From Paramicrosporidium saccamoebae KSL3 (taxonomy: Eukaryota; Fungi; Cryptomycota), in the NCBI GenBank assembly GCA_002794465.1, contig MTSL01000169.1, positions 16,546-48,545 on the forward strand: a DNA stretch of 32,000 nucleotides. Direction: 5' to 3'. Shown piece by piece: positions 126 through 30,079 of the stretch. Numbering within the stretch: the first letter of the stretch is position 1; every line of letters begins with the position of its first letter. The notes beneath the pieces were generated by a model. That model ran no database searches, was not told the origin of the DNA, and saw only the letters and a list, made by a program, of their open reading frames with translations. The translations under genes were made by a program, and so were the position numbers.

Positions 126-778
126 CTAGGGCTTCTTGGAAACACCAACATCGGCAGGACGGATCACTCGTTGGTTCAACATATAACCCTTCTTTTGCAC
201 CGCCACAATTGTCCCCGCATCTACGTCCCCTTTTGGCACTTCATACAGTGCATTGTGGGAATTCGGATCAAATTTTTGATGCATCGGGTCAATAATGCTC
301 AGTCCATGACGTCCAAACACCCTGTGCAGCTCGTCCATTGTCATGGAGAGTCCAGACACCAAGTCGTCTAGTCGTTTCTCGGCCGGCACCGATGTATCGG
401 GCTTGGTGCTCCCGAGAGCCATCTCCAAAACGTCAGCAACTGACACAATATCTTTGCAGAAACGCTGAATGGCAAATTGACTGGCCGCCTCAATATCTCT
501 CTTTGTCCGTTGTCGCAGATTCTCCATGTCTGCCAGCGACAGCAAGTATGAATCCTATGCGTTAGAAGCAGTTGCGATGGTACTTTGAGCTCTTTAAGCT
601 GTCCATCCTTCTCGGCCAAATCCTTTTTGAGGGCATCTATCTCTGAAACGGACCCGCCGTTGCTGGTCTCTTTCTGTTCGGTAGAGTACAGTCTTCTTCC
701 CACGACTGCGCTTCTAGTCTTTTGGGCTACATTAAATGTTCTGCTGGCTAGGCAGACTCGTCTCAACGCCTGCATCAT
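126..778 (-). CDS. MGE1: Mitochondrial GrpE co-chaperone (Mge1); 2 exons, intron 555-583 (29 nt)
   Basis: Joining ORFs 368..778 and 126..545 over GTACC...CTAAC...ATAG gives LKELK|DSYLLSLADMENLRQRT...KFDPNSHNA...KGYMLNQRVIRPADVGV (GrpE motifs). The N-terminus is Arg/Ser-rich and presequence-like. Confidence 0.95.
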
Positions 779-1325: not shown

Positions 1326-3283
1326 CTATTTCATGTATTTCTGGATTAAATTTGTCACTTCAGGTCGATCCCCAAGACACTTTAGACAGTCTTCTAGCTT
1401 CCGCAATAAAACCTCCACCTCATCCACTAAAGGTATCTGAAGGGATATCTTGGACCTCCATCGTGTTCCCTCCTTTTCGCGCACGGCTAGCTGATCAAAC
1501 TGAACAGAGCCTCCTTCACGCTGTAAGAACGAGACCAGGTCTGTTTGTAGATGAGCCAAGCTCGGGTTTTCAAAGACAGACAGATCTGAAGCAAACCGTA
1601 AATAGATTTCGCAATCTCTTAAGAACGAGACGGAGGCTCGAGTGTTTGGGGGACAGCATTTGAGCAACGTTGTTTGGAGAAGCTCTTTCCATTTGGAATC
1701 TGTAAAGTCGAGGCTGGGCACTAGAGCCGCCGATGATATCAAGGACATTGAAATGAATGGAGGCAACTTTTCTATACAATTTAACAAGTCTGGTGTCTCA
1801 ATGGGCTCAAAGTATTTTAGCGATAATCGCAGTGCCCGTCCGCACAGAGCTATTAGCCTTGGGCATTTAGCTCGCTCCAAAACCGTCTTGACTGTGGCCC
1901 GCAGTTCACGGCACGAGGTGGGTTGTGGGAATTCAGTGCAGAAATTTGTAGCTGCAGCTAACGGCCAATAAAAGAGCCTGTCATCCAAATCGGCAGATTC
2001 GGTGTGCATCTTCAAGATGAGATCCAAGGAATCTCGAAAACTTTCTTTCACAAGCTACAAAGTAAGTATGGCATCACGATTCGTACCTGCTTCAGAGCAG
2101 CCTTCTCAAGGTGAGCCAATACGACCAGTCCCTCGATAGTTCCAAAGTCCCTTACATCTTTAATTCTAGACCGTGACAACAGCTTCTTCAATACAATCCT
2201 TAACAAGAGAAGTTCCCAGTTTTGTTCTGGTTGGAAACTGTGCTGAGCGACTAGAGCGGCAAGTGTCTTTGCAATCCGGAGAGATTTTTGTTCTTCCTTG
2301 ACGCTCCACAAAGTGGTGCAAAGATTCATCCAGAATCCCAATTGGACTACCGAGTAGCTTTTACTCTGACGGACGCCACTAGCCGAATCTACGTCCATTG
2401 CTTTAGTCTTTGTATTTAGCAAGGCTCCTCCAACGGTGCCAGGAGCGTAATGCTCGTTCTTGACAATTGGCCTCAGACTCTCACCCAGATCTGCTGGCAC
2501 TGGGCAATCGGGGCCGCTTCGAAAGGGGAGAGAGAGTAAATCGGCAACAAGAGAGCCGTCCGGCTGGGTTTGGATTATGGCTACAATGTCAGCGAGGGAG
2601 GAATGAGGAATCTTGATGCGTTTTAGCGAATACTTGTTCAGCTTTAACGAGGCTCTTACAAATTGAAACCATTTGCCGAGATCAAACAGCTGTGAATTTT
2701 TGGACACTGTGGCGCAATGCTTCAGTAATAGAGTCAGAGCACATACTCTAATATCATCGCCAATTGTAGGGTTCTTTGCAAGCACCTTGAGACAACACTG
2801 CCACAAACTGATAGAATTTAAATCAGTTGGATCAAGCAGCTCCATCACCTTCAAGCATCTTTCGGTAATTGACCTGTACAAATTGGCATCAGAGGCGTAT
2901 GGGCCGGTTAGAATGACGCAGAGTAGACTGGAGGCATTTGACGTGAATGCACCGGAAAGATTCAGCGGGACAAATGACAGCCCGACCCGGCACAGATTTA
3001 ATGCAGTGTCAATTATTAATATCACCTCTTGAACAGCGACCTTTCCAGACCCGCAAGCTTCAATTACTTCGGGAAACAGCGCAATCGCCTAAAATATAGC
3101 GGGCAATGACTAGTGATACAGATACAACTGCATTATCCACATCCACAGTCTGCCCACAATTGAGACGTGTAGAAATGGCCTCTAGCTGGTTCACTTTCTA
3201 CCAAATTATTGTATCAATCAAGAGTGTACATCGGAAAGACCCCGAATAAGATGGCCTGCGGGTACGCGCTCTTCAAAAGTCAT
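1326..3283 (-). CDS. Hypothetical Leu-rich, probably alpha-solenoid protein (about 620 aa); inferred introns 3198-3229, 3089-3125, 2055-2086
   Basis: ORFs 2048..3025 and 1326..2051 join in frame over a 32-nt GTACG..TAG intron (ALKQ|LVKESF). Two further GT-AG introns extend the frame to an ATG at 3283. No family recognised. Confidence 0.65.
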
Positions 3284-3316: not shown

Positions 3317-3691
3317 ATGACGATAGCAGAGAGCTCCGACAACCATGTGCCAAAGCCATATCAAATCCCACACTTCTCCGGTCCCAAGACGACTGAGGAA
3401 TACATGGAGGAAGCAAAGAACTGCGACAACCCGAATACACTCTATATGGACAAAAAGTCGGAGCGCAGCCGAGAACTGCTCATCTTTATGGGAGAGACCA
3501 ATATTTGGGAGGATATCTTGCAAGATTGCGTTAATCGTGCCGGTGTGAATGCAAGCGGTGCTTGCGCAAAGTTGCATGAAATTGTTGATGAGCGAAACAA
3601 GTATTATAATTCAAACTTTAATGCTGGTCTGAGGCCCACAAAAACTCCTGGAATCCCCCCAATATTTGAACGACGGCCTCCGCCATCATAG
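3317..3691 (+). CDS. NDUFB10: Probable complex I accessory subunit NDUFB10/PDSW-like
   Basis: RE..(x)..E..I.E..L..C-x11-C pattern with GVN (CVNRAGVNASGAC), recalled as typical of NDUFB10; 124 aa. Confidence 0.55.
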   Translation: MTIAESSDNHVPKPYQIPHFSGPKTTEEYMEEAKNCDNPNTLYMDKKSERSRELLIFMGETNIWEDILQDCVNRAGVNASGACAKLHEIVDERNKYYNSNFNAGLRPTKTPGIPPIFERRPPPS

Positions 3692-3843: not shown

Positions 3844-5289
3844 ATGTCCCATATTTTTTACAAGTTCAAGTCTGCAAAGGACTATGACGCGTACAAGTTT
3901 GATGGAGCAGGCATCCCGGTTTGGGAGCTGAAGAGGGAAATTGTGCAAGCCAAAAAGTTGGGAAAGTCAACCGACTTTGATTTAATCCTCACTAACGCCC
4001 AGTCTAGCGAAGATTACACTGACGACATGAAAATTATCCCAAAAAATGCACAAGTGGTTGTAAAAAGAGTCCCTGCCGCAGCAGGAAAGAGGATGCCGGC
4101 ATTCCAACCTAGGGCGCCATCAACCTTTTCGACCATTACCCGGCCCTTTATGGCAACGCCTTCAACAGCCGGCGCCACTGGAGATGAAGATTCCAAAATT
4201 GCAGCCATGATGGCTGCTACGGGAAGCCACTGGGAGCAGAATCAGCAGGACATGCCTATGCAGCAGCAAGGGCCACGCCGCTTCTTCCGACCTCCCAACT
4301 TTAGAGGTCAAGCAGCCCAAGCCCCACCAGATACATATGTTTGCTATCGTTGTGGCCAAAAAGGTAAGATCCTGCCATGTCCGCTCTGACAATATTTAGG
4401 TATCCATGATCTTATAATAGTTTTAATAAGTTTGTACGTAGGCCATTATATTCAATATTGTCCAACTAATGCTGATCCGACATTTGATAGGACTCGAGTG
4501 AGGAAGACTACTGGCATTCCCAAAAGCTTCCTCAAGCCAGTCAGCAGTGAAGCCGCAGATCCCTCTTCGTCAGCAGCAGTGCTGGTGACGCCGGAAGGAA
4601 ATTTGGTAGTGGCAGCACCAAATGAGCGCGAGTGGGACCGAATTTCCACAATCAAATCATTGGCAGATACTGCGGCGTCAATTCCTCCCGAGGCAGTTCC
4701 TCAAGAACTCAAATGCGCTTTGGGCGATCATTTGTTAAACAATGCGGTTCGAGTTCCCTGCTGTACAGCGGCATTTTGTGACGATTGCATGAGGAAACTT
4801 TTTGAGGAATCTAGCACCAGTGCCGGCGCTGCTACTACTGGAATTGTGTCCATCGAATGTCCTAGTTGCAAGAAGCAGATCATCCAGGATAAAGTATTGC
4901 CTCATGAGGAGCTTCGTGCCAAGGTTATCCTGTTCCTCGAGAGTCACAATAAGTTTGCCCTGCCCAAAGAGAATAATGAGGAGGGGATTTCGGCCCAAAA
5001 GAGCCCCATGATGAACGAACCCCCCAAACCATCGCCGCCATTACCACCACACATGTTCCCCCCGGGAATGCCACCCCTTCCGTTCTTCTTGCCAGGATTC
5101 TTACCTCCTGGCCTGCCACCAATGTTTCCCCACCCACACCATCCAGTTAAGCGAGGAGCACACGATGATCGTCGTGGACGCGATCGATCACAATCTCCTT
5201 CTCGGTCCAGGTCTAGATCGCCGAAGCGAGGAAGGCAACGCTCGAGGTCACCAAGACGGCGTTCCTATTCCAGATCGAGATCACCTTGA
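3844..5289 (+). CDS. MPE1: MPE1/RBBP6 cleavage-polyadenylation factor (DWNN, zinc knuckle, RING-like, Pro-rich, RS tail); complex intron 4364-4441
   Basis: DWNN start MSHIFYKFKS...LKREI. Splicing 4364-4441 restores the knuckle CYRCGQKGHYIQYC. PCC..FCDDC..CPSC RING-like region; RS dipeptide C-terminus. Confidence 0.93.
4364..4441 (+). other. Complex intron made of two abutting GT-AG units (4364-4399 and 4400-4441)
   Basis: GTAAGA...CTGAC.AATATTTAG|GTATCC...TACGTAG. Each unit falls in the size range of the other introns in the window. Confidence 0.7.
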
Positions 5290-5604
5290 TCATAGATAAA
5301 CTACAGGATTTATTGATTTCTAAAATTACCAAACATGGGAGTGCATAATTGAGTAAATGTTTCTTTGATTCTCCCTCACCTCGGTCCCAGATAAGCTACC
5401 GATGTACAGTAATGAAATGATTAGCTGGGTGATATGTGGTGAGCCCTACATGGAGACAAGAGATGCAGGATGCGAAACGAAAGGCGCGAAATGGAAAACA
5501 CGAAATAAAAGGTGAGAGACGGAAAGATTGACCCTTTACCCATGCCTTGGCATCTTTCCCACTATATATCATATTCCCAGCTTCCACCTCCCAAATCTCA
5601 ACTC

Positions 5605-5631
5605 CCACCACACAACACACCACACCACACA
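5605..5631. repeat. Low-complexity CA/CACCA tract
   Basis: ccaccacacaacacaccacaccacaca upstream of the TMEM115-like gene. Confidence 0.6.
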
Positions 5632-5760
5632 TCGCATGATTGATCGATTTCTTAGTATAATCCAAATCCGCCAAATTTCTAAAATTAGAAGTGTTTTACC
5701 AAATATGGGAATACATAAAACTAGACTAATGGTCGCGTCCCCGCAACCACAACTAATCAT

Positions 5761-6779
5761 ATGTCTCTCCGATTTTCGCTCGACTCTGTGCCCAAGTCTA
5801 CAAAAGTTCTGGTTGGCACCTTCTTAGGTCTCTATGCCATTTATCGGATTACTGGAGTGCCAATGTCGGTGACACCGGGATTACAAATGTTCCTCAAACC
5901 GTGGACATTTCTAACTGCCACATTCTTCCTTCCAGATTTGCTATCCGTAAGCCCCTCCAACTCTTGTAAATGGTGGTAGATTATCCTAGTAGTACCTGGT
6001 GTGGTCTTGTGTACCACTAGATTGGAACGCACAACTCAGCCCGCCGAAATGCTGCGTACCTGCGGGATTGCAGCATGCCTTTCCACTGTTGTGACCGCCA
6101 TGATCTATACATTTAAATCAATGCTCATCAACTTGGAGGAGTACTACTAGACGCCTTTATTAATGCTGCTAGATACGACATTGTCACAATATCGGGGCCG
6201 ATGGCACTCTTTGGTTCATTTGCCGTGAGCATTATGCAACAAAGCCCCGATGCAACCTTTTTGATGCTCCCAAACATTTCCATCTCCGCAACTATGCTGC
6301 CAGCGGGAGTGCTCATTATTGCGCTTCTCTCGTCGCTGGCTGTGCAGTCATTTGCCCCATTAATTTTGTCGACAGGTGGAGTACTCAGTACGTATTGGTA
6401 TTTGCGATACATACGAATTGTTGATGGCCATAAAGGCGACCGATCGATTGGAATGTCCTTCTCCATCATGTTCCCTCCCATCCTGAGACCTCTGGGCGAA
6501 TTGCTAGCCGAAAGGTCTTACCAGATTGCAGCAAAGTATGACAAATGGTCCTTATTGCAGGACACTGATCTCGAAGGGCGTCCAACAACTCGTCGGCTGT
6601 CAGCACAGGAAGAAGGAAGACGCCGACAATTGGCATTGCAATTATTGAATGAAAAAATGTCGCAAAAGCGCGAGAAGGAGGGGGCACCGGAGATTCTAGA
6701 AGAATTGACCCAATCAAGCACAGGGAATCCAAACATTCCATTGGAGACTGGTCGTCCTATGATGCTTCAGCAAGCATGA
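5761..6779 (+). CDS. TMEM115/DUF1751-like (rhomboid-superfamily) membrane protein; introns 5947-5979, 6141-6172
   Basis: PWTFLTATF motif, hydrophobic segments and C-terminal RRRQLALQLLNEKM. Both GT-AG introns restore a single frame. Confidence 0.75.
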
Positions 6780-7252
6780 TCCTCTCAGAGCAGAGCGGAG
6801 CCGAGAGCTACTAGTATCTCGATGCATGATGAAAACAGAACATGGTACTATTACACTCTTGTACTCCTGTAATAAATGGCCACCATAATACTCATTATTA
6901 CCCAATCACAAAGAACCCATATCGGCCAATTATGCTATAGCAAGTCTAATGCCCCGTCGGGGTCCAATAGCATCTCAGTGCATAACGGAAACAGGAGAAT
7001 GTAATAAATATCCAACCAACGGTAGCCGCCTTAATAATAGTGACACCCCCTCCCCCCGCGAATAACCTTCCTAATCCGGTACATCCGTAATATCCTGCAA
7101 TTAACTAGATTAATTTAGCCGGAACAACGCAGATTAGGTAAACAGATTAAATTGCCGTCACACTCTCAGCACTCATCCACCACTAGGCTAGACGCAACTC
7201 CAATACCTTTACAATCTACTCTGTCACTTGCCACCCTAGAAGAACTACTAAA

Positions 7253-9314
7253 ATGCAGCCCTCCATAGAGTCCGCACCCGAGGTTCTTGTGGGCACTCGT
7301 CCAAAATGGAACAGTATCGTAAAGTCCGACGACCAAGACCGAATCGGAAAGCCAATAGTCATGCCCGGCATGCAGTCCAACCAGCGCTCACGGGTATGCA
7401 ATTTATCAGGACGTTTATTAATTCGGTAGAGCGAGTCAGTTCCGGAAATCAGGACCACCTGTGCCACAAGTCCCGAGGGCTCCTTGCTGTTGTCGTCAAA
7501 CCTTGGAGCTGACTCTTTGTCCAAAATGTTGGACATTTCCTTGAAATGGGACCAGCCTGACCAGGCAATTTCGCCGCTGAGTCCATTAAGGTCGCCGATT
7601 GTGGCCGATTGGAAGGCCGTGGGCAGTCCCATTGCCCCACCGAGCCAGGACGAGAAGAAAATGTTTAACGGACCATCATCCGAAGCAACAGCGAACAAAA
7701 GTCCACCAAGCGAAACAGCCTCCCGCATCCGTCGACAGCGCGCAATGAGTCTTAGCGAGAAGGGCGTCTTTTCGCAGCGACCATTCTCTCCATTCGACTT
7801 GCAAAAGCTAGAGATCGATTCGCTGAATGGGGAGCCGGAAAAGTCTAGCATTAGTAATGCAACAAGCCCTGACAAGCTCGGCCGACCCAATTTGTCGTTG
7901 CAAGTGGCTCAGCTTCCTCCAGAACTTCACAAAGAACTTGGCGTGGAGAACGCCGACGAGGCTACTGAGATATTTAAGCGTTCATCGATGGATTCCCTCC
8001 GAGTAAAGAACACTAGCCAAAGCCCCATTGACAGTGACTCGTCCCCGGCGAAACAGCCACTAAGCACAATGCCGAGTCTATTCGGCCGAATGCCTTTTGG
8101 CCCTGCTGCAATGGTTTTTGGCTCTGAACAGCAGCCACCAAAGGATGCAGCCGAGAGCGAGGATATGGACGAATTGAAGGGGGACGGATTTGGTCGCCGG
8201 CATAGTTCCCTTTTCGGCCTTCCTGCAGACTGGTCTAATGAAGCCCCGTCAGAGTTTTCTGTAGATGATTATTTTACAAATGCCACTCTCTCCAGGTACA
8301 TTAGTGTATATTTACTGAGCGTATAGGTCTTCCTCGACTAGAGCACATCCTCGGCGTCATTCCATCGCAGCCACAGCTCTCTTCCCCGAGGTTGAAGAGC
8401 ATTTGGGCTCATTGTCATTATCGTCAAATCACCTCGAGTCTAGCCTAAGCCCTTCGGCTGCCTCATTCCACTTTCGAGGATATGGTTCACAGTCGGCAGC
8501 CTCCATTCTGGACTACATGTCAATGGCTTCTTCAGGTGATGATATGATTGGCAGTCTGCATGGAGCGTCATATCCGTCCATCTCTTCGTCTTCAATGCGC
8601 GATGCAAGCTTTCAACTATCCTCTTACAAAGGCCCTCTTTATGCAGTTGAATTCAAGGCCGGAAGAACCGAGATTTTCTATGTATTGGAGATTGACGGCA
8701 AGCCGCAATTGCGTGGAGTCCGAGTGGGAGATTTGGTCATTGTAGAGGCCGACAGAGGCGAAGACTTGGGCAAAGTGACCATTGAGATTACAGTGGACAA
8801 GTTGAAGCAGCTCATGATGCCCGGGTCTGAGGCCCACAATCGAGCTGACAAGGACAGTGATATTCTGACCCCCGAACTGGCCGCTTTGGTCCACTCCAAG
8901 GAGATTGTTCCCAAGAGGATTCATCGATTGGCGCAGCAAAGCGATCTAAAACTTCTCCAAGCCAAAGCACAAGAAGAGGCCATTGCAATGGTGCGTTGTC
9001 AAAGTCGAATTCGCCAAAAGAAGCTGCCCATGGAAGTCGTCGATGCCGAGTATCAATGGGATCGTAACAAGCTGACTTTTTACTTTTGTGCCGATCGTAG
9101 GATTGACTTCCGTGAGCTCGTCCGCGATCTCTTCCGCATTTACAAGACTCGAATTTGGATGTGCGCTGTGGACAAGAGCAGTCCTCGTATGCTAATGTAT
9201 ACTTCACCAAGTGGTGCTGCTGGTTCAGCTTCACTAGGGATGAGCAGTGGAGATGCGTCCGTTCCGTCCACCACATTCTTCTCCTTTGGAGGAGGACATC
9301 CAAATCTATCCTAG
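7253..9314 (+). CDS. PSP1-family protein with C-terminal PSP1 domain; introns 7394-7429, 8296-8326
   Basis: VEFKAGRTEIF, GDLVIVEADRGEDLG, DAEYQWDRNKLTFYF...RIDFRELVRDLFRIYKTRIWM. Long Ser-rich N-terminal region; introns restore the frame. Confidence 0.88.
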
Positions 9315-11169: not shown

Positions 11170-11853
11170 ATGAGCACTGCAAGGTCTAGCTTAACTCGCA
11201 GAGTATTCGACTTTTGGTTTGGAGGTACACGTTGGCGCGGTGCTTAAGGTCTAGGCGAGCTAGCCGCTGGCAAACCCCTGGACCCAAAATTGGCAAAATT
11301 GTGGTTTGGTGCAGAGGCGAGCGTGGATGCTGAAATCAGAAGCCAGTTCCTTCAAGACGTAGAGTCGACCGTAGAATCCACCGCCAAGTTCGAGTCGCTC
11401 CAATTAGACCCACAAGATGCCCTCGCTGGCACCATCCTTCTGGACCAGTTCACTCGTAACATGTTCCGCGATTCGCCCCGCATGTTTGCTCACGACCCAT
11501 TGGCATTGCAACTCGCCCGTGTCGCCGTAAAGAAGGGTTTTGACATGCAGATAAGTCACCCGCTGATGCGCACATTCTTCTACATGCCATTCATGCATTC
11601 GGAAGATTTAGTCGCTCAGGATGAGGGAATGGAATTGTTCCAAAAGGCATTTACGATTGAGCCTGAAGAGTCTCCATATAAGGAAAATCTAGCCGGCAAT
11701 ATCAGTTACATGAAGAGACACCGCGATATTATTGCCAAGTTTGGGCGCTTCCCGCATAGAAACGAGAATTTGGGCAGAACTAGTACTGCCGAAGAGACGG
11801 CGTTTTTGACTGGTGGTGGAGACACTTTTGATAGCCGCCAGAACAAGAAATAA
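11170..11853 (+). CDS. DUF924-family protein; intron 11225-11254
   Basis: VFDFWFG|GE...LWF...VDAEIR; ILLDQFTRNMFR; FFYMPFMHSEDL; HRDIIAKFGRFPHRN. Confidence 0.9.
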
Positions 11854-15858: not shown

Positions 15859-15913
15859 AAGGCAAACAAAATTTTTCTATTGATTCTACATCACAGACAG
15901 ACTGCAGCAAAGT

Positions 15914-16342
15914 CTAATGTTCGCGTACTATAGACGCTATTTCTTGGTTGATGCCCGCAATCTCTTGCTGCATCCTTCGGAGACTATCAGAAATTTCATC
16001 GGCCATTCGGGTGTGCACGCTTGTCCATCCTGCACTGCCTTCCCGGCCGGATTCCTTGTTCACCCGCTTTCCAATTCGGCGATTCATCTCAATGCCTTTG
16101 TCCTCCAATACAGAAATCTTTGTCATGGACTCGGAAGCCATATCCTTTGATCTTTTGGTCAAGTGTGCCGGCTTCAGTCTGTTATGAGCCAACTCTGCGC
16201 TGTCATGTAGTCCAAACTCGCGCTCAAGCACCTCTTCACACTCTCCTCGATCTTCAGTTTGGAAGGATTCCCGACAGTCAGAGTATTGAGTCTCTCCAGT
16301 GCTGGTTCGACATCTGCTAAAAATGTTTCTTAGCCATCTCAT
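15914..16342 (-). CDS. Hypothetical 142-aa protein with C-terminal coiled-coil-like segment
   Basis: ATG-initiated ORF fills the gap upstream of ALG1; heptad-like LRRMQQEIAGINQEIASIV. No family recognised. Confidence 0.5.
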   Translation of the reverse strand: MRWLRNIFSRCRTSTGETQYSDCRESFQTEDRGECEEVLEREFGLHDSAELAHNRLKPAHLTKRSKDMASESMTKISVLEDKGIEMNRRIGKRVNKESGREGSAGWTSVHTRMADEISDSLRRMQQEIAGINQEIASIVREH

Positions 16343-25522: not shown

Positions 25523-26971
25523 CTATCTACTCCATTTCTTCTTGTTAGTCTCGGCCTTTTCGCCGAATTTCCGATCGTGAAGAGCCATGCTCGCTGTCCG
25601 TTTGGCAGCAGAGACCTCATTCAAAATTTGGACCACCTCTTTTTCTGTAGGGGCGCTCACGTATGGTTCAAGCTTCTTCTGTATGCAATCTTCAATATTC
25701 TTCAGCAGATCCATGTCCAATTCATGTACAAAAGATATTGCGGATCCAATTCGTCCAGCACGAGAAGCACGTCCGATCCGATGTACATAATCATGGGCAT
25801 CCGCTGGAAGATCAAAGTTTACCACAACCTCGACAGACGGGATATCCAGTCCGCGACTTCCCACATCTGTAGTAATAAGCAACTTCATGGCTCCACTCTT
25901 AAACTTATCCAACGAGGCGATCCTGGCTTTTTGGGGCATTTGACCATGAAGGCCGATCACCTCGACTTTTAGCTGGCGGAGCATCCCCACAACAAGCTCA
26001 CAAGTTCTACATTTTCCGACAAATACAATCACCGTGCGACTTAAAAGGGGTCCGCGTAGAAGCTGAACCAGGTGTGAATCCCTCACCTGACTGGGAACCA
26101 GCATAAAGTATTGCTGTGCCGTCTCTACCGTTCCGAATTCTGAATTACCATCAAATTTAAAAGGAATAGCATCCGGACGCTTTAGGCGGTGGAAGGCAGA
26201 AACAGCAGATGTCATGGTTGCGGAGAAAAATAGCCACTGCGTGCGTCTGTTGCCGACATTTTCAAGGATTGTCGGAATTTCAGATTTAATAAAGGAAGAC
26301 TCCGGGGCTACTAGACGATCTGCCTCATCAAAGATGAGATAACGCAGGCGATCCATCTTCAGCTGCCCATTTGACATGAGGTCTGCCAGCCTTCCAGGAG
26401 TGGCTACAATAATGTGGGGCTTTTTTGTCATTTCTATGGACTGCTTCATCATGTCTTAACAATAATAAGGCAACTGTGATGAGAGAGTACCTAACCCCCC
26501 GACTGCTACACAAATGCTGATCTTCATGGCGCTACCTAGAATTTGAAACTGTTCGGCTATCTGAAGCGCTAGCTCTCTAAAATATAGCAAAATTCCTAGA
26601 ACATACCGTGTTGGCGTCAGAACTAGAGCGTAGAATCCATGTGGATCACGAGAAAGGCTATGCAAGATGGGGACGGCAAAAGCAGCAGTTTTGCCAGATC
26701 CCGTTTTAGCAGCTGCCAAAGCGTCCATCCCTTTTAGAACAGCTGGAACACATGCTCTCTGAACAGCGGTGGGATGATGGATACCCAAGCCCTTTAACGC
26801 GCAGGCTAGCCACCTATCGATCCCCAAGGCGTCAAAGGACAATAACTCGTTGTTCTCGATACCGTCAGTTTTCGTGTCAGTTTTGCTGGAATCCTTTGTG
26901 GCACATTCTACAGCGTCGATTTTGTTCTTTTTTGAGGAGGGGGCAAAGAAAACCACCTCACCATGTTCCAT
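25523..26971 (-). CDS. DBP8: DEAD-box RNA helicase Dbp8/DDX49; introns 26577-26606, 26455-26490
   Basis: Q motif, AKTGSGKT, RDPHGFYALVLTPTR|ELALQIAEQF, TPGR, DEAD, SAT, RGLD, HRIGR. Confidence 0.93.
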
Positions 26972-27579
26972 AGGAAACTGACCGGGGACTTTGATTTTGT
27001 GAAATATATTTCAATCATACCGAACTAAAATAAAAGCAATCAGCCTACTGTATTTATGTCGAGTTAGCACCAAGAAATTAAAAAAAGTAGACTCTTGTAT
27101 CTTGAGAGCCCTTAATAGATATTTCTAGCCTATCTCAATCCTTGTGCTATCTAATGCGTTTGCCCGACGATCTAGTATTGGTTTGTATGTTATGAGTGCC
27201 AACAGAATATTTTGTGTACTATTGTAGTAAAGCCTTTAAGAAAAGTGCTTGCCGATGGCTACAAAAATAAAACCGGCATACTGAGCGCTTTACATTTCGA
27301 AGCACAGTAAACTACTAGGTCTCTTGGTACAGCAAGTATAATGTGCAATGTGGGAGATCCGATAGACAGAGTTTTATAACCACGTTAGCCAGTATCAACC
27401 GCCCTTGCGCAATTCTGGCTTGAGCAGTGAATGTGTGCACAAAGAAAAGTTCAAGTATCTCACTGCATGTACACTGCATTATTAAACTGAAACTCTGGTA
27501 GCGAGGATTTATTAACCGATCATGAATTTTTCGAGAGAATGTAAGGCTTTTAACCGATATTTTGTAAAGTGCACTATTG

Positions 27580-27601
27580 AAAAATTGTGCGCACAATTTT
27601 T
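27580..27601. repeat. Perfect 22-bp palindrome
   Basis: AAAAATTGTGC|GCACAATTTTT. Confidence 0.9.
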
Positions 27602-28759
27602 GAAAGGTATTGTCAAAGCCCGACTGAAATGGCATGCTCTTGATCAAAATATTCGAAGCAAAACTGAAGAAATTTTATTACAGAGTATTGTCCTGTATGT
27701 ATTTGGATTGCACTCGGCTTTAAACGATATATGCCTCGTAAGCAGGCTCAAAAAATTTAGCCGTTCATATAACTCCCAGCGCTGACAACTTAATGTGTCT
27801 ATAATCATATAATTTAAACAAGTTACCCTAAAGGACACTGCACGCGTAATTAACAAGAGGTAACGAAGGCATTATAAATTTCGCTCGCGTTAAAGCTATC
27901 TTGCTTGGTAGAGGGCGCCGTGGAAATCCTAAGCAATTTGAGCTAAGGTTGTCAAACAGCCCGCATCACAATTATTGTGTCGTTGAAATTTTCGGAATAA
28001 TCTCCTGGATAATATTCCGTTTCGGTAGTCTGTCGCCATTGCTTGTATAGGCAGCAACATATAGTCCTTATTTCTGATTGGAATTGCCAGATATCAAGAT
28101 CTAGCAAGGCATCTCGAAATAATATTGTATGTCTTCTCTTTTAGCAAGTCCTGTTTGGGTAGAAAGGAACCTATTGCATCACGTGCATAGTGTCCCTATT
28201 GACAAGTGGCTGTCTAATATTTACGCCCTAAGTATTGACAGTAGCAAAGCTGCATATTGTCAGGCTAATATATTCTGCGCACTAGTGATATACGTTAATT
28301 GTGGTGTAGACGGGCAGCCTGCAATTCCACTAGTGTCCTCATGAGTGATAAGGTTGCTAATGAACCTTGGATAGAACGCCCAAGTTTATCAAATCGCTCG
28401 GATATATTTGAATCGTCCTTTTCCATGACTGGTCTACAAGTTCCGGAACAATGTTTTTACACATTGCAAGTATTAGAGCCCGTTGATCATTTGTCTCACT
28501 AGAATATACTTATCATTAGTAAATGAGCAAGTAGAAACGAGGATTATATAGTTATCAACGTCTCATGGCTTATGCGATAGGCCCAAGCATACGATCTTTA
28601 GTCAAGAATTTGATCTGAGATACATAAACTAGAGGTAACGGGCAAAGCAAAGACACAAGGCCTCTGATGAAAGCACCAGTATCAGCTTGCAGCTTCTGGA
28701 TATTCCCGTAATAGTCAATCACTGGTCGACCCCCGCGGTAAAGCAACCCATCGACATTC

Positions 28760-29902
28760 ATGGACGCACCTCAAGAGTCTGGCCCTTCCTTGGCTTCTTT
28801 CGAGACAGTTGTCACACTAGTTACTGAAAGGTCTCTTACGCCCTATACAATTTTTATGACGAGAGAGTGCTGGGCCTACATTCGGTATGCATCGTTAAAT
28901 ATTGACTGTAGGTTATATGTGGAAGAACATGAGCTTTGTTCGATTGGATTTTTCAAGAGTGCTGAAAAGATGCAAACTGCATCTAGTTGTGTAGGAATCA
29001 TCTCCTCTGGCAGTGTAAATTATGCAGCAATTAATAACGTGCATTTAGGGTCCAGACAATCGTAATGACCAAATTACAGACTCAAATTACATTATGTGCA
29101 AAATCAAACCCTCGTTCAAAGACCTCAATATCAAAGGTGGAACAATAATTCCAATATGTTGTGGAGAAAATATGCTCCGGCTTTTGGAGACGGCTTTGCA
29201 AACTGGCCATCCTCGGATTGTAATTATATCTCCAGTTGCCACCAAGTGCCTAAAGCTACGAAATCTGTACTTTGGATATCAACGTGAATTTGAAGTATTC
29301 AAAGCACCCAGAGTGCAAATTCCGTTTGAAGACCACATCTCAAATGGTCGTTTGTTAGTATTCGAGTCAATTAACGAAGAGTTGGTGTCTTTGGCATCAA
29401 GCATGTCTGATTCATGCATTTTTGTAGCTCCACTATGGCTGAACGAAGTGTCACAATTAATGGCCAGCCTTCGTGTCACGACGTGCGAATCTCAATTCTT
29501 TGTTCTAGAGAGAAAACCCCGCAGAAATCAAAGTTCAGTAATGCACATTGATTCTGGAGTCGCATCTAGACAGATTTTAAGCTCATTAATTTCGATCAAC
29601 AGTGTCTCCAATGCACATTACCCTCAATCTACAATCGGCTTACGCACACAAGAAGTATTAAATGGCAAAGCATATTCAGCTGATGCTTTTCTGAAGGTCC
29701 TCACAAAGGTAGAAATTTATAACCACTATATTGTTAGGCACAGTTCCGGTCTATAGAGTTGCAGGAATTTCCCGAGAACAGACTGTCTATCGAAGTCAAT
29801 CGTCTCGACACAAAATTCTTTTTCCATGAGAACATGCTCGAAAGGGTTGAAATCTTGGATCCCGATAGCTGTAGCCAAGTTATAAAAATAATCTCATCCT
29901 GA
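28760..29902 (+). CDS. Hypothetical orphan protein (about 350 aa); introns 28885-28911, 29015-29048, 29709-29737
   Basis: ORFs 28760..29065 and 29094..29756 and an unlisted open stretch to TGA at 29900-29902 join in frame over typical short GT-AG introns. No family recognised. Confidence 0.65.
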
Positions 29903-30079
29903 GATTCCGCATTCGCCTTGTGGCGTCAACACCTTCCCATTGCATATATTAGTTTCGGATGGCATCGGCCTATCGGCATCCTCGCATATGTTAACGCTAC
30001 ATTGCCCAGACCTTCCGTGGCTTCGCTTATCCTTATCAGCCAGCTCCTCCACCGATTCATGATCGAATTGCGTCCTGGG

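Follow-up and report, generated by a model that had tools for sequence, protein, structure and literature searches.

Abutting introns in the MPE1/RBBP6 zinc knuckle of Paramicrosporidium saccamoebae suggest removal of a 78-nt sequence in two steps

How is an intervening sequence of 78 nt removed from a transcript when the introns around it are typically about 32 nt long? The question is raised by the MPE1/RBBP6 gene of Paramicrosporidium saccamoebae, an intranuclear parasite of amoebae that belongs to the Rozellomycota, is close to the Microsporidia and has a genome of 7.3 Mb. The genome was assembled from an amoeba-culture metagenome, and spore RNA-seq of 73 million read pairs also exists (Quandt et al. 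2017, PMC5701793). We analysed one 32,000-nt stretch of it, hereafter the window (contig MTSL01000169.1, positions 16546-48545), and coordinates below are those of the window. Its G+C content is about 0.46-0.50, apart from a section at 27001-30000 where it is 0.38-0.41.

The MPE1/RBBP6 gene lies on the plus strand at 3844-5289 and has a single intervening sequence, the 78 nt at 4364-4441, which is in phase 1 and falls within a CCHC zinc knuckle. Exon 1 ends with ...CAA AAA G (4363) and exon 2 starts with GC CAT TAT (4442). Removal of the 78 nt gives a 455-aa protein in which CYRCGQKG/HYIQYC is restored (CYRCGQKGHYIQYCP; here and below, a slash within a sequence marks a junction). This product can be aligned collinearly with all relatives from end to end and is 99% identical to the hypothetical protein PSACC_02594 of P. 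saccamoebae. In Pfam, residues 4-77 matched DWNN and residues 162-182 matched zf-CCHC_2, the latter with all 21 profile positions matched end to end. The DWNN domain, the zf-CCHC_2 zinc knuckle and a RING-like region together constitute the MPE1/RBBP6 architecture. As its removal restores a conserved, collinear protein, the 78-nt sequence fits a canonical U2-type GT-AG intron. A transcript-derived copy of MPE1 was sought in the protein collection, where identity above 90% was found only to the NCBI genomic model.

The 78-nt sequence is itself divided by an internal TAG/GTA (TTTAG/GTATCC, 4399/4400) into 36 + 42 nt, and each part has the anatomy of a complete intron (Table 1). The predicted branch A of unit 2, at 4426, is 27 nt from the donor of its own unit and 63 nt from the donor of unit 1. 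Keeping unit 1 brings an in-frame TGA stop into the message. Keeping unit 2 inserts 14 in-frame residues between the invariant G174 and H175 of the CX2CX4HX4C motif, and the zf-CCHC_2 match is then broken into two. A preliminary description of this DNA had divided the 78 nt at AG/GT into the same two units, and had held that both must go if CYRCGQKG/HYIQYC is to be restored. Its coordinates and sequences proved exact, and the stop in unit 1 and the split zinc-knuckle match with unit 2 bear out the second claim. The two-unit arrangement is therefore confirmed as a real feature of the sequence.

Table 1. Features of the MPE1/RBBP6 gene and of the three validated introns, in window coordinates.
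Feature	Position	Strand	Description	Basis
MPE1/RBBP6 exon 1	3844..4363	+	ATG to first base of Gly codon; DWNN and first half of CCHC zinc knuckle (CYRCGQK-G)	ORF, translation, Pfam
Unit 1	4364..4399	+	GTAAGATCCTGCCATGTCCGCTCTGACAATATTTAG, 36 nt, canonical GT-AG (GTAAGA...CTGAC...TTTAG), in-frame TGA	sequence
Predicted branch motif, unit 1	4386..4390	+	CTGAC; branch A 4389, 26 nt from donor, 10 nt from TAG at 4399	YTRAY scan
Internal junction TAG/GTA	4397..4402	+	unit-1 acceptor abuts unit-2 donor ('zero-length exon')	
Unit 2	4400..4441	+	GTATCCATGATCTTATAATAGTTTTAATAAGTTTGTACGTAG, 42 nt, canonical GT-AG (GTATCC...TTAAT...CGTAG), multiple of 3, no in-frame stop	sequence
Predicted branch motif, unit 2	4423..4427	+	TTAAT; branch A 4426, 15 nt from TAG at 4441	YTRAY scan
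MPE1/RBBP6 exon 2	4442..5289	+	GC of Gly codon, HYIQYCP..., RING-like region, Pro-rich region, RS tail, to stop codon	
Validated intron	26577-26606		30 nt	alignment to solved homologues
Validated intron	26455-26490		36 nt	alignment to solved homologues
Validated intron	555-583		29 nt	alignment to solved homologues

The NCBI gene models, which we reconstructed from gene ranges and product lengths, were rejected as a reference for local intron lengths, as they replace 30-32-nt introns by 90-101-nt ones, truncate GrpE and fuse MPE1 to an upstream ORF. One model has a 101-nt intron (2055-2155) where a 32-nt intron (2055-2086) joins two long ORFs. Another has a 90-nt intron (11225-11314) that deletes 20 codons (...ELAAGKPLDPKLAKLWFG...) kept by a 30-nt intron (11225-11254); these codons resemble what we take to be the usual N-terminal motif of DUF924 proteins. 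The GrpE model (126-583) is cut to 133 aa, and the 29-nt intron at 555-583 joins an upstream exon to it, as validated by alignment to human GrpEL1. In PSACC_02594 (550 aa), an unrelated 124-aa ORF with no Pfam match (3317-3691) is fused to MPE1 through a spurious intron of >200 nt, and the true MPE1 start, MSHIFYK, is dropped. Very short introns thus appear to be poorly handled in the annotation of P. saccamoebae, and at least three of the gene models nearby contain errors. Comparisons of gene content that rely on P. saccamoebae as an important relative of Microsporidia are affected. A search for published intron statistics for P. saccamoebae found none.

Because the NCBI models are a poor reference, introns were curated afresh, by hand, from ORF joining and homology; brute-force enumerations of possible ORF joins were too noisy for direct use. 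Three of the curated introns were validated by gapless alignment, across the junctions, to the solved structures of DDX47 and mitochondrial GrpE (Table 1). Curated introns invariably begin with GTA and usually end with TAG, and in half of them a strict YTRAY motif is present, at a distance of 7-21 nt from the 3' end. The 22 other introns inferred in the window are 27-42 nt long, with the addition of one unvalidated 52-nt candidate (15877-15928); the median is 32, the mean 34.0 and the SD 5.6 nt. The earlier statement that every other intron measures 27-42 nt is therefore almost correct, the one exception being the 52-nt candidate. The MPE1 sequence, while tiny in absolute terms, exceeds the local mean by ~8 SD and is ~2.4 times as long as the median intron. 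Its units of 36 and 42 nt both lie within the local range (n = 22).

The splice signals of the two units were scored with position weight matrices, which rest on 17 curated introns only and describe signals that are low in information in P. saccamoebae (essentially GTA...TAG); their leave-one-out medians were ~5.6 bits for donors and ~4.5 bits for acceptors. Unit 1 scored 8.3 bits at its donor and 7.8 bits at its acceptor, and unit 2 scored 7.6 and 6.3 bits, respectively. The two sites that meet at the internal junction, the 7.8-bit acceptor and the 7.6-bit donor, rank near the 99th percentile when compared with every AG and every GT in the window, and the 8.3-bit donor of unit 1 is likewise in the top 1%. 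In each unit the distances from the predicted branch A to the unit's own donor and acceptor are as in the curated introns that carry YTRAY. For excision in one step, the sole usable branch site would be separated from the donor by 63 nt, roughly double the maximum found among curated introns.

Chance rates were obtained from simulated 78-nt introns with shuffled or composition-matched interiors. Any AG/GT that leaves both halves at 27-52 nt occurred in 6-7% of these. Both internal sites reached the lower quartile of real introns in 0.7%, and both reached the observed scores in about 1e-4. The internal sites of the MPE1 sequence therefore exceed chance expectation. On both strands of the window YAG/GTA occurs 19 times, and the junction at 4399/4400 is the only intragenic occurrence with intron-like units on both sides. 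We also considered an RNA structure that would loop out one unit or mask the internal sites, and rejected it, as folding energies were no better than those of shuffled sequences (z = 0.07 for the 78 nt alone, +1.2 when the flanks were included). The minimum-energy fold includes 8 bp of complementarity between the unit-1 donor region at 4364-4371 (GUAAGAUC) and the start of unit 2 at 4407-4414 (GAUCUUAU), again with an energy not better than shuffled.

Two further places in the window resemble the MPE1 junction in part. At 1194-1259, in apparently intergenic DNA with a minus-strand gene on either side, an intron-like pair of 41 + 25 nt abuts at TAG/GTA, so abutting intron-like patterns can arise outside genes in AT-rich sequence. 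The second intron of PSP1 (8296-8341) also ends in TATAG/GT. Here the reading frame is kept whether the acceptor is at 8326 (for an intron of 31 nt) or at 8341 (46 nt, the NCBI choice), so the 3' splice site may be an alternative one; the 15 nt in between could not form an intron unit, being too short.

Relatives carry an intron at the same place. The same Gly codon is split after its first base (AAAG/.../G-N CAT) in two Paramicrosporidium-like metagenome contigs (L001 and L002), in a marine (TARA) metagenome contig (L014), in Spizellomyces punctatus (L015) and in Basidiobolus meristosporus (L016). Comparison among orthologues had been called for in the preliminary description, and both position and phase turned out to be kept in these five other taxa. 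The position of the zinc-knuckle intron is ancient. It has been lost in three relatives (L003, L005 and L006). A second intron, in the DWNN domain after NAQ(S/T)N(D/E), is found in relatives (L003, ~2960-3000; L005, ~2660-2720; L001, ~270-340) and is absent from the window gene. The distribution of the DWNN and zinc-knuckle introns indicates that intron loss in MPE1 has been mosaic across the clade.

The length of the intron at this position varies, being 74 nt in Spizellomyces punctatus, 83 nt in Basidiobolus meristosporus, 57 nt in L001 and 31 nt in L002. The last of these is the nearest relative (71-84% protein identity) and is syntenic with the window over 4162-8299. A search of metagenomes for more close relatives gave only distant homologues, of 27-53% identity. 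Conservation of the internal AG/GT is not seen: at this position L002 carries just one intron, of 31 nt, and AGGT does not occur in the 57-nt intron of L001. Three other introns orthologous between the window and L002 measure 33/33, 32/33 and 36/37 nt, compared to 78/31 nt for that of MPE1. As these other introns differ by no more than 1 nt, the difference of ~47 nt in MPE1 points to one discrete event rather than drift. Such an event would be a change of ~42-47 nt beside a pre-existing splice junction, through either gain in P. saccamoebae or loss in L002.

Where might the extra length have come from? Origin by duplication was rejected: unit 1 was compared with unit 2, and the units with the flanking exons and the orthologous introns of L002 and L001, and against shuffle controls the best p was 0.08. 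Neither unit thus showed a resemblance, to its partner, to the exons beside it or to the introns of L002 and L001, that would polarise gain and loss. In a check for a mobile-element or introner-like origin, no further copies of unit 1 or unit 2 were found in the 38.7 kb of contig examined. In a test for target-site duplication, AGGTA was found to flank unit 1 and TAGG to flank unit 2, and repeats of this kind are forced by the splice-site consensus alone. Of 15 homologues, 7 have GT (Gly GGT) as the opening letters of exon 2, among them L002 and both outgroup fungi. The internal TAG/GT may therefore be the old, ancestral boundary between intron and exon, with unit 2 a later insertion that needed splicing from the start. 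An intron in another gene of L002 (~1796-1828, GTAAAATCCTCTGACGCCCATCAATATTTATAG) is closer to unit 1 (GTAAGATCC...CTCTGACAATATTTAG) than the orthologous MPE1 intron is. This likeness probably reflects a shared constraint on signals in introns of ~30 nt, and could be a hint of a family of related introns.

Two complete, normal-sized introns lying end to end suggest removal in two steps. Introns in this lineage have shrunk to ~32 nt, and the ancient phase-1 intron at this position consists here of two full units abutting at TAG/GTA. We propose that each unit is recognised by intron definition and that removal usually takes two reactions. Were unit 1 to leave first, a donor (AAG/GTATCC) would be regenerated, following the logic of a zero-nucleotide recursive splice site; were unit 2 to leave first, unit 1 would be left intact. 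Direct excision of the 78 nt may serve as a parallel route. All three courses (unit 1 then 2, unit 2 then 1, single excision) would yield an identical mRNA.

We favour sequential removal because the predicted CTGAC and the TAG of unit 1 have the spacing seen in the other introns of the window, no RNA structure hides the sites and the zinc knuckle must be intact. As a general rule, the first AG downstream of the branch point is chosen, and we infer that the predicted CTGAC, with TAG 10 nt downstream, will be used. On this reasoning from sequence, we lean slightly towards sequential removal, through a zero-length exon, as the main route. It counts against this reading that unit 2 belongs to a class of introns, stop-free and a multiple of 3 in length, that was reportedly found by Jaillon and colleagues in 2008 to be disfavoured in ciliates with ultra-short introns.

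The sequence could instead be one ordinary 78-nt intron, with 4364 as its donor, 4441 as its acceptor and the TTAAT at 4423-4427 as its branch site. The internal TAG/GTA would then be unused, and be either a coincidence or an evolutionary relic, such as an earlier intron-exon boundary beside which 42 nt were inserted. The NCBI/MAKER model PSACC_02594 does remove the 78 nt as one intron, although several models next to it are demonstrably wrong for short introns. The single introns of 57, 74 and 83 nt at the exact position in L001, Spizellomyces and Basidiobolus are consistent with excision in one step, as are the possible 52-nt intron at 15877-15928 and the 120-bp intron reported in the RPS23 gene of P. 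saccamoebae (PMC6349667). While chance alone places an eligible AG/GT in 6-7% of simulated introns of 78 nt, the internal sites of MPE1 are far above chance and equal to bona fide sites. Moreover, a consensus CTGAC lies 10 nt upstream of the internal TAG and at the usual distance from the donor, so its being skipped would need explaining, and no RNA structure was found that hides the internal sites or joins the ends. Weighing these points, we regard removal as a single ordinary intron as a serious alternative, though a less likely one.

The 120-bp RPS23 intron also implies that the P. saccamoebae spliceosome is not strictly limited to 30-40 nt. Of the reading first offered for this locus, the anatomy stands: the units are complete, canonical and of normal size, the internal signals are strong and both units are needed out. 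Its rationale, a spliceosome tuned to introns of 30-40 nt, is weakened by the RPS23 intron, by the possible 52-nt intron and by the orthologous introns of 57-83 nt. It is unlikely, in our view, that P. saccamoebae-like spliceosomes are efficient only over ~25-50 nt, with longer sequences surviving only as tandem minimal units removed in turn. If that were true, recursive splicing through a zero-length exon would have in MPE1 its first example on a scale of 78 nt, and the locus would capture the gain of an intron (or unit-wise loss in the sister lineage) beside an ancient intron, with the old AG/GT re-used.

Regulated alternative splicing would account for the two units differently, with unit 1 constitutive and unit 2 an optional in-frame cassette that gives a second MPE1 isoform with 14 more residues (IHDLIIVLISLYVG). 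As unit 2 is 42 nt long, a multiple of 3, and stop-free, its retention would leave a translatable transcript that is not subject to nonsense-mediated decay. A stop-free frame is, however, expected in 38% of shuffles, and the insert between G174 and H175 would break the zf-CCHC_2 match in two. No relative has genuine extra coding residues here either, as those in one homologue (P0004) are the 57-nt intron of its species read through in frame. An optional cassette is thus very unlikely. The remaining alternative, that the extra 42-47 nt were misassembled or that the true gene structure is different, gains something from the origin of the assembly in an amoeba-culture metagenome (PMC5701793) and from the errors in neighbouring NCBI models. 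It has against it the end-to-end collinearity of the spliced product with all relatives, the lack of repeats or duplications of the 78-nt sequence elsewhere in the 38.7 kb of contig examined, and the presence of an intron at the same position in five other taxa. We consider such an artefact the least probable explanation.

If sequential removal of the two units is real, recursive splicing would not be confined to the very long introns of animals and would occur also in a genome with introns of ~32 nt. The MPE1 locus would then offer a natural test of how tightly intron length is limited by intron definition, and a dated example of intron doubling or halving between two closely related species.

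Several known systems bear comparison. Microsporidia and their relatives have long introns in the genes for poly-A-binding protein and RPS23 (PMC6349667), which, like the MPE1 sequence, are outliers in length within genomes, from the one broad clade, whose introns are otherwise short or few. Those introns have in common a conserved stretch in their interior and a hyper-extended branch site, and each is believed to be removed efficiently in one piece, whereas the MPE1 sequence has neither element. It also differs from the zinc-knuckle introns of MPE1 in other fungi, which are single (31, 57, 74 and 83 nt), of normal length for their genomes and without an internal YAG/GTA split. In a search of full-text literature, we found no paper linking recursive splicing with microsporidia, Rozella, Paramecium, Cryptococcus or nucleomorphs.

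Recursive splicing through zero-nucleotide exons is known from Drosophila, where it occurs at ratchet points, for example in Ubx, and has been surveyed genome-wide (Duff et al., bioRxiv 10.1101/006163). The MPE1 sequence has the pattern of such a point, namely a juxtaposed YAG/GTA within an intron and a predicted branch site (CTGAC) upstream. As in Drosophila, the YAG/GTA lies inside one annotated intron, a donor would be regenerated at the end of exon 1, and the mRNA would be the same as after one-step removal. Drosophila ratchet points, in contrast, are shared between species and lie in introns of great length (tens of kb), while the MPE1 sequence of 78 nt is >100 times smaller and made of pieces the size of minimal introns, and its internal site is absent from L002.

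The stwintrons of fungi consist of two U2-type introns removed by consecutive reactions, and are proposed to originate when an intron acquires new splice sites, either internally or next to it; for a given stwintron sequence of Lipomyces starkeyi, removal can take one reaction or two (PMC5639578, PMC6616335, PMC7138796). The MPE1 sequence resembles them as a two-intron complex in a fungus for which we propose consecutive reactions. It is not a stwintron sensu stricto, because neither unit interrupts the donor, branch site or acceptor of the other. Nor are its units nested, as in stwintrons sensu lato (PMC7138796); they are adjacent, and nested only in the trivial sense of lying inside a possible 78-nt intron. 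Unlike those of stwintrons, the two units of MPE1 stand side by side, each with all of its own signals, and removal in either order or in a single step would work.
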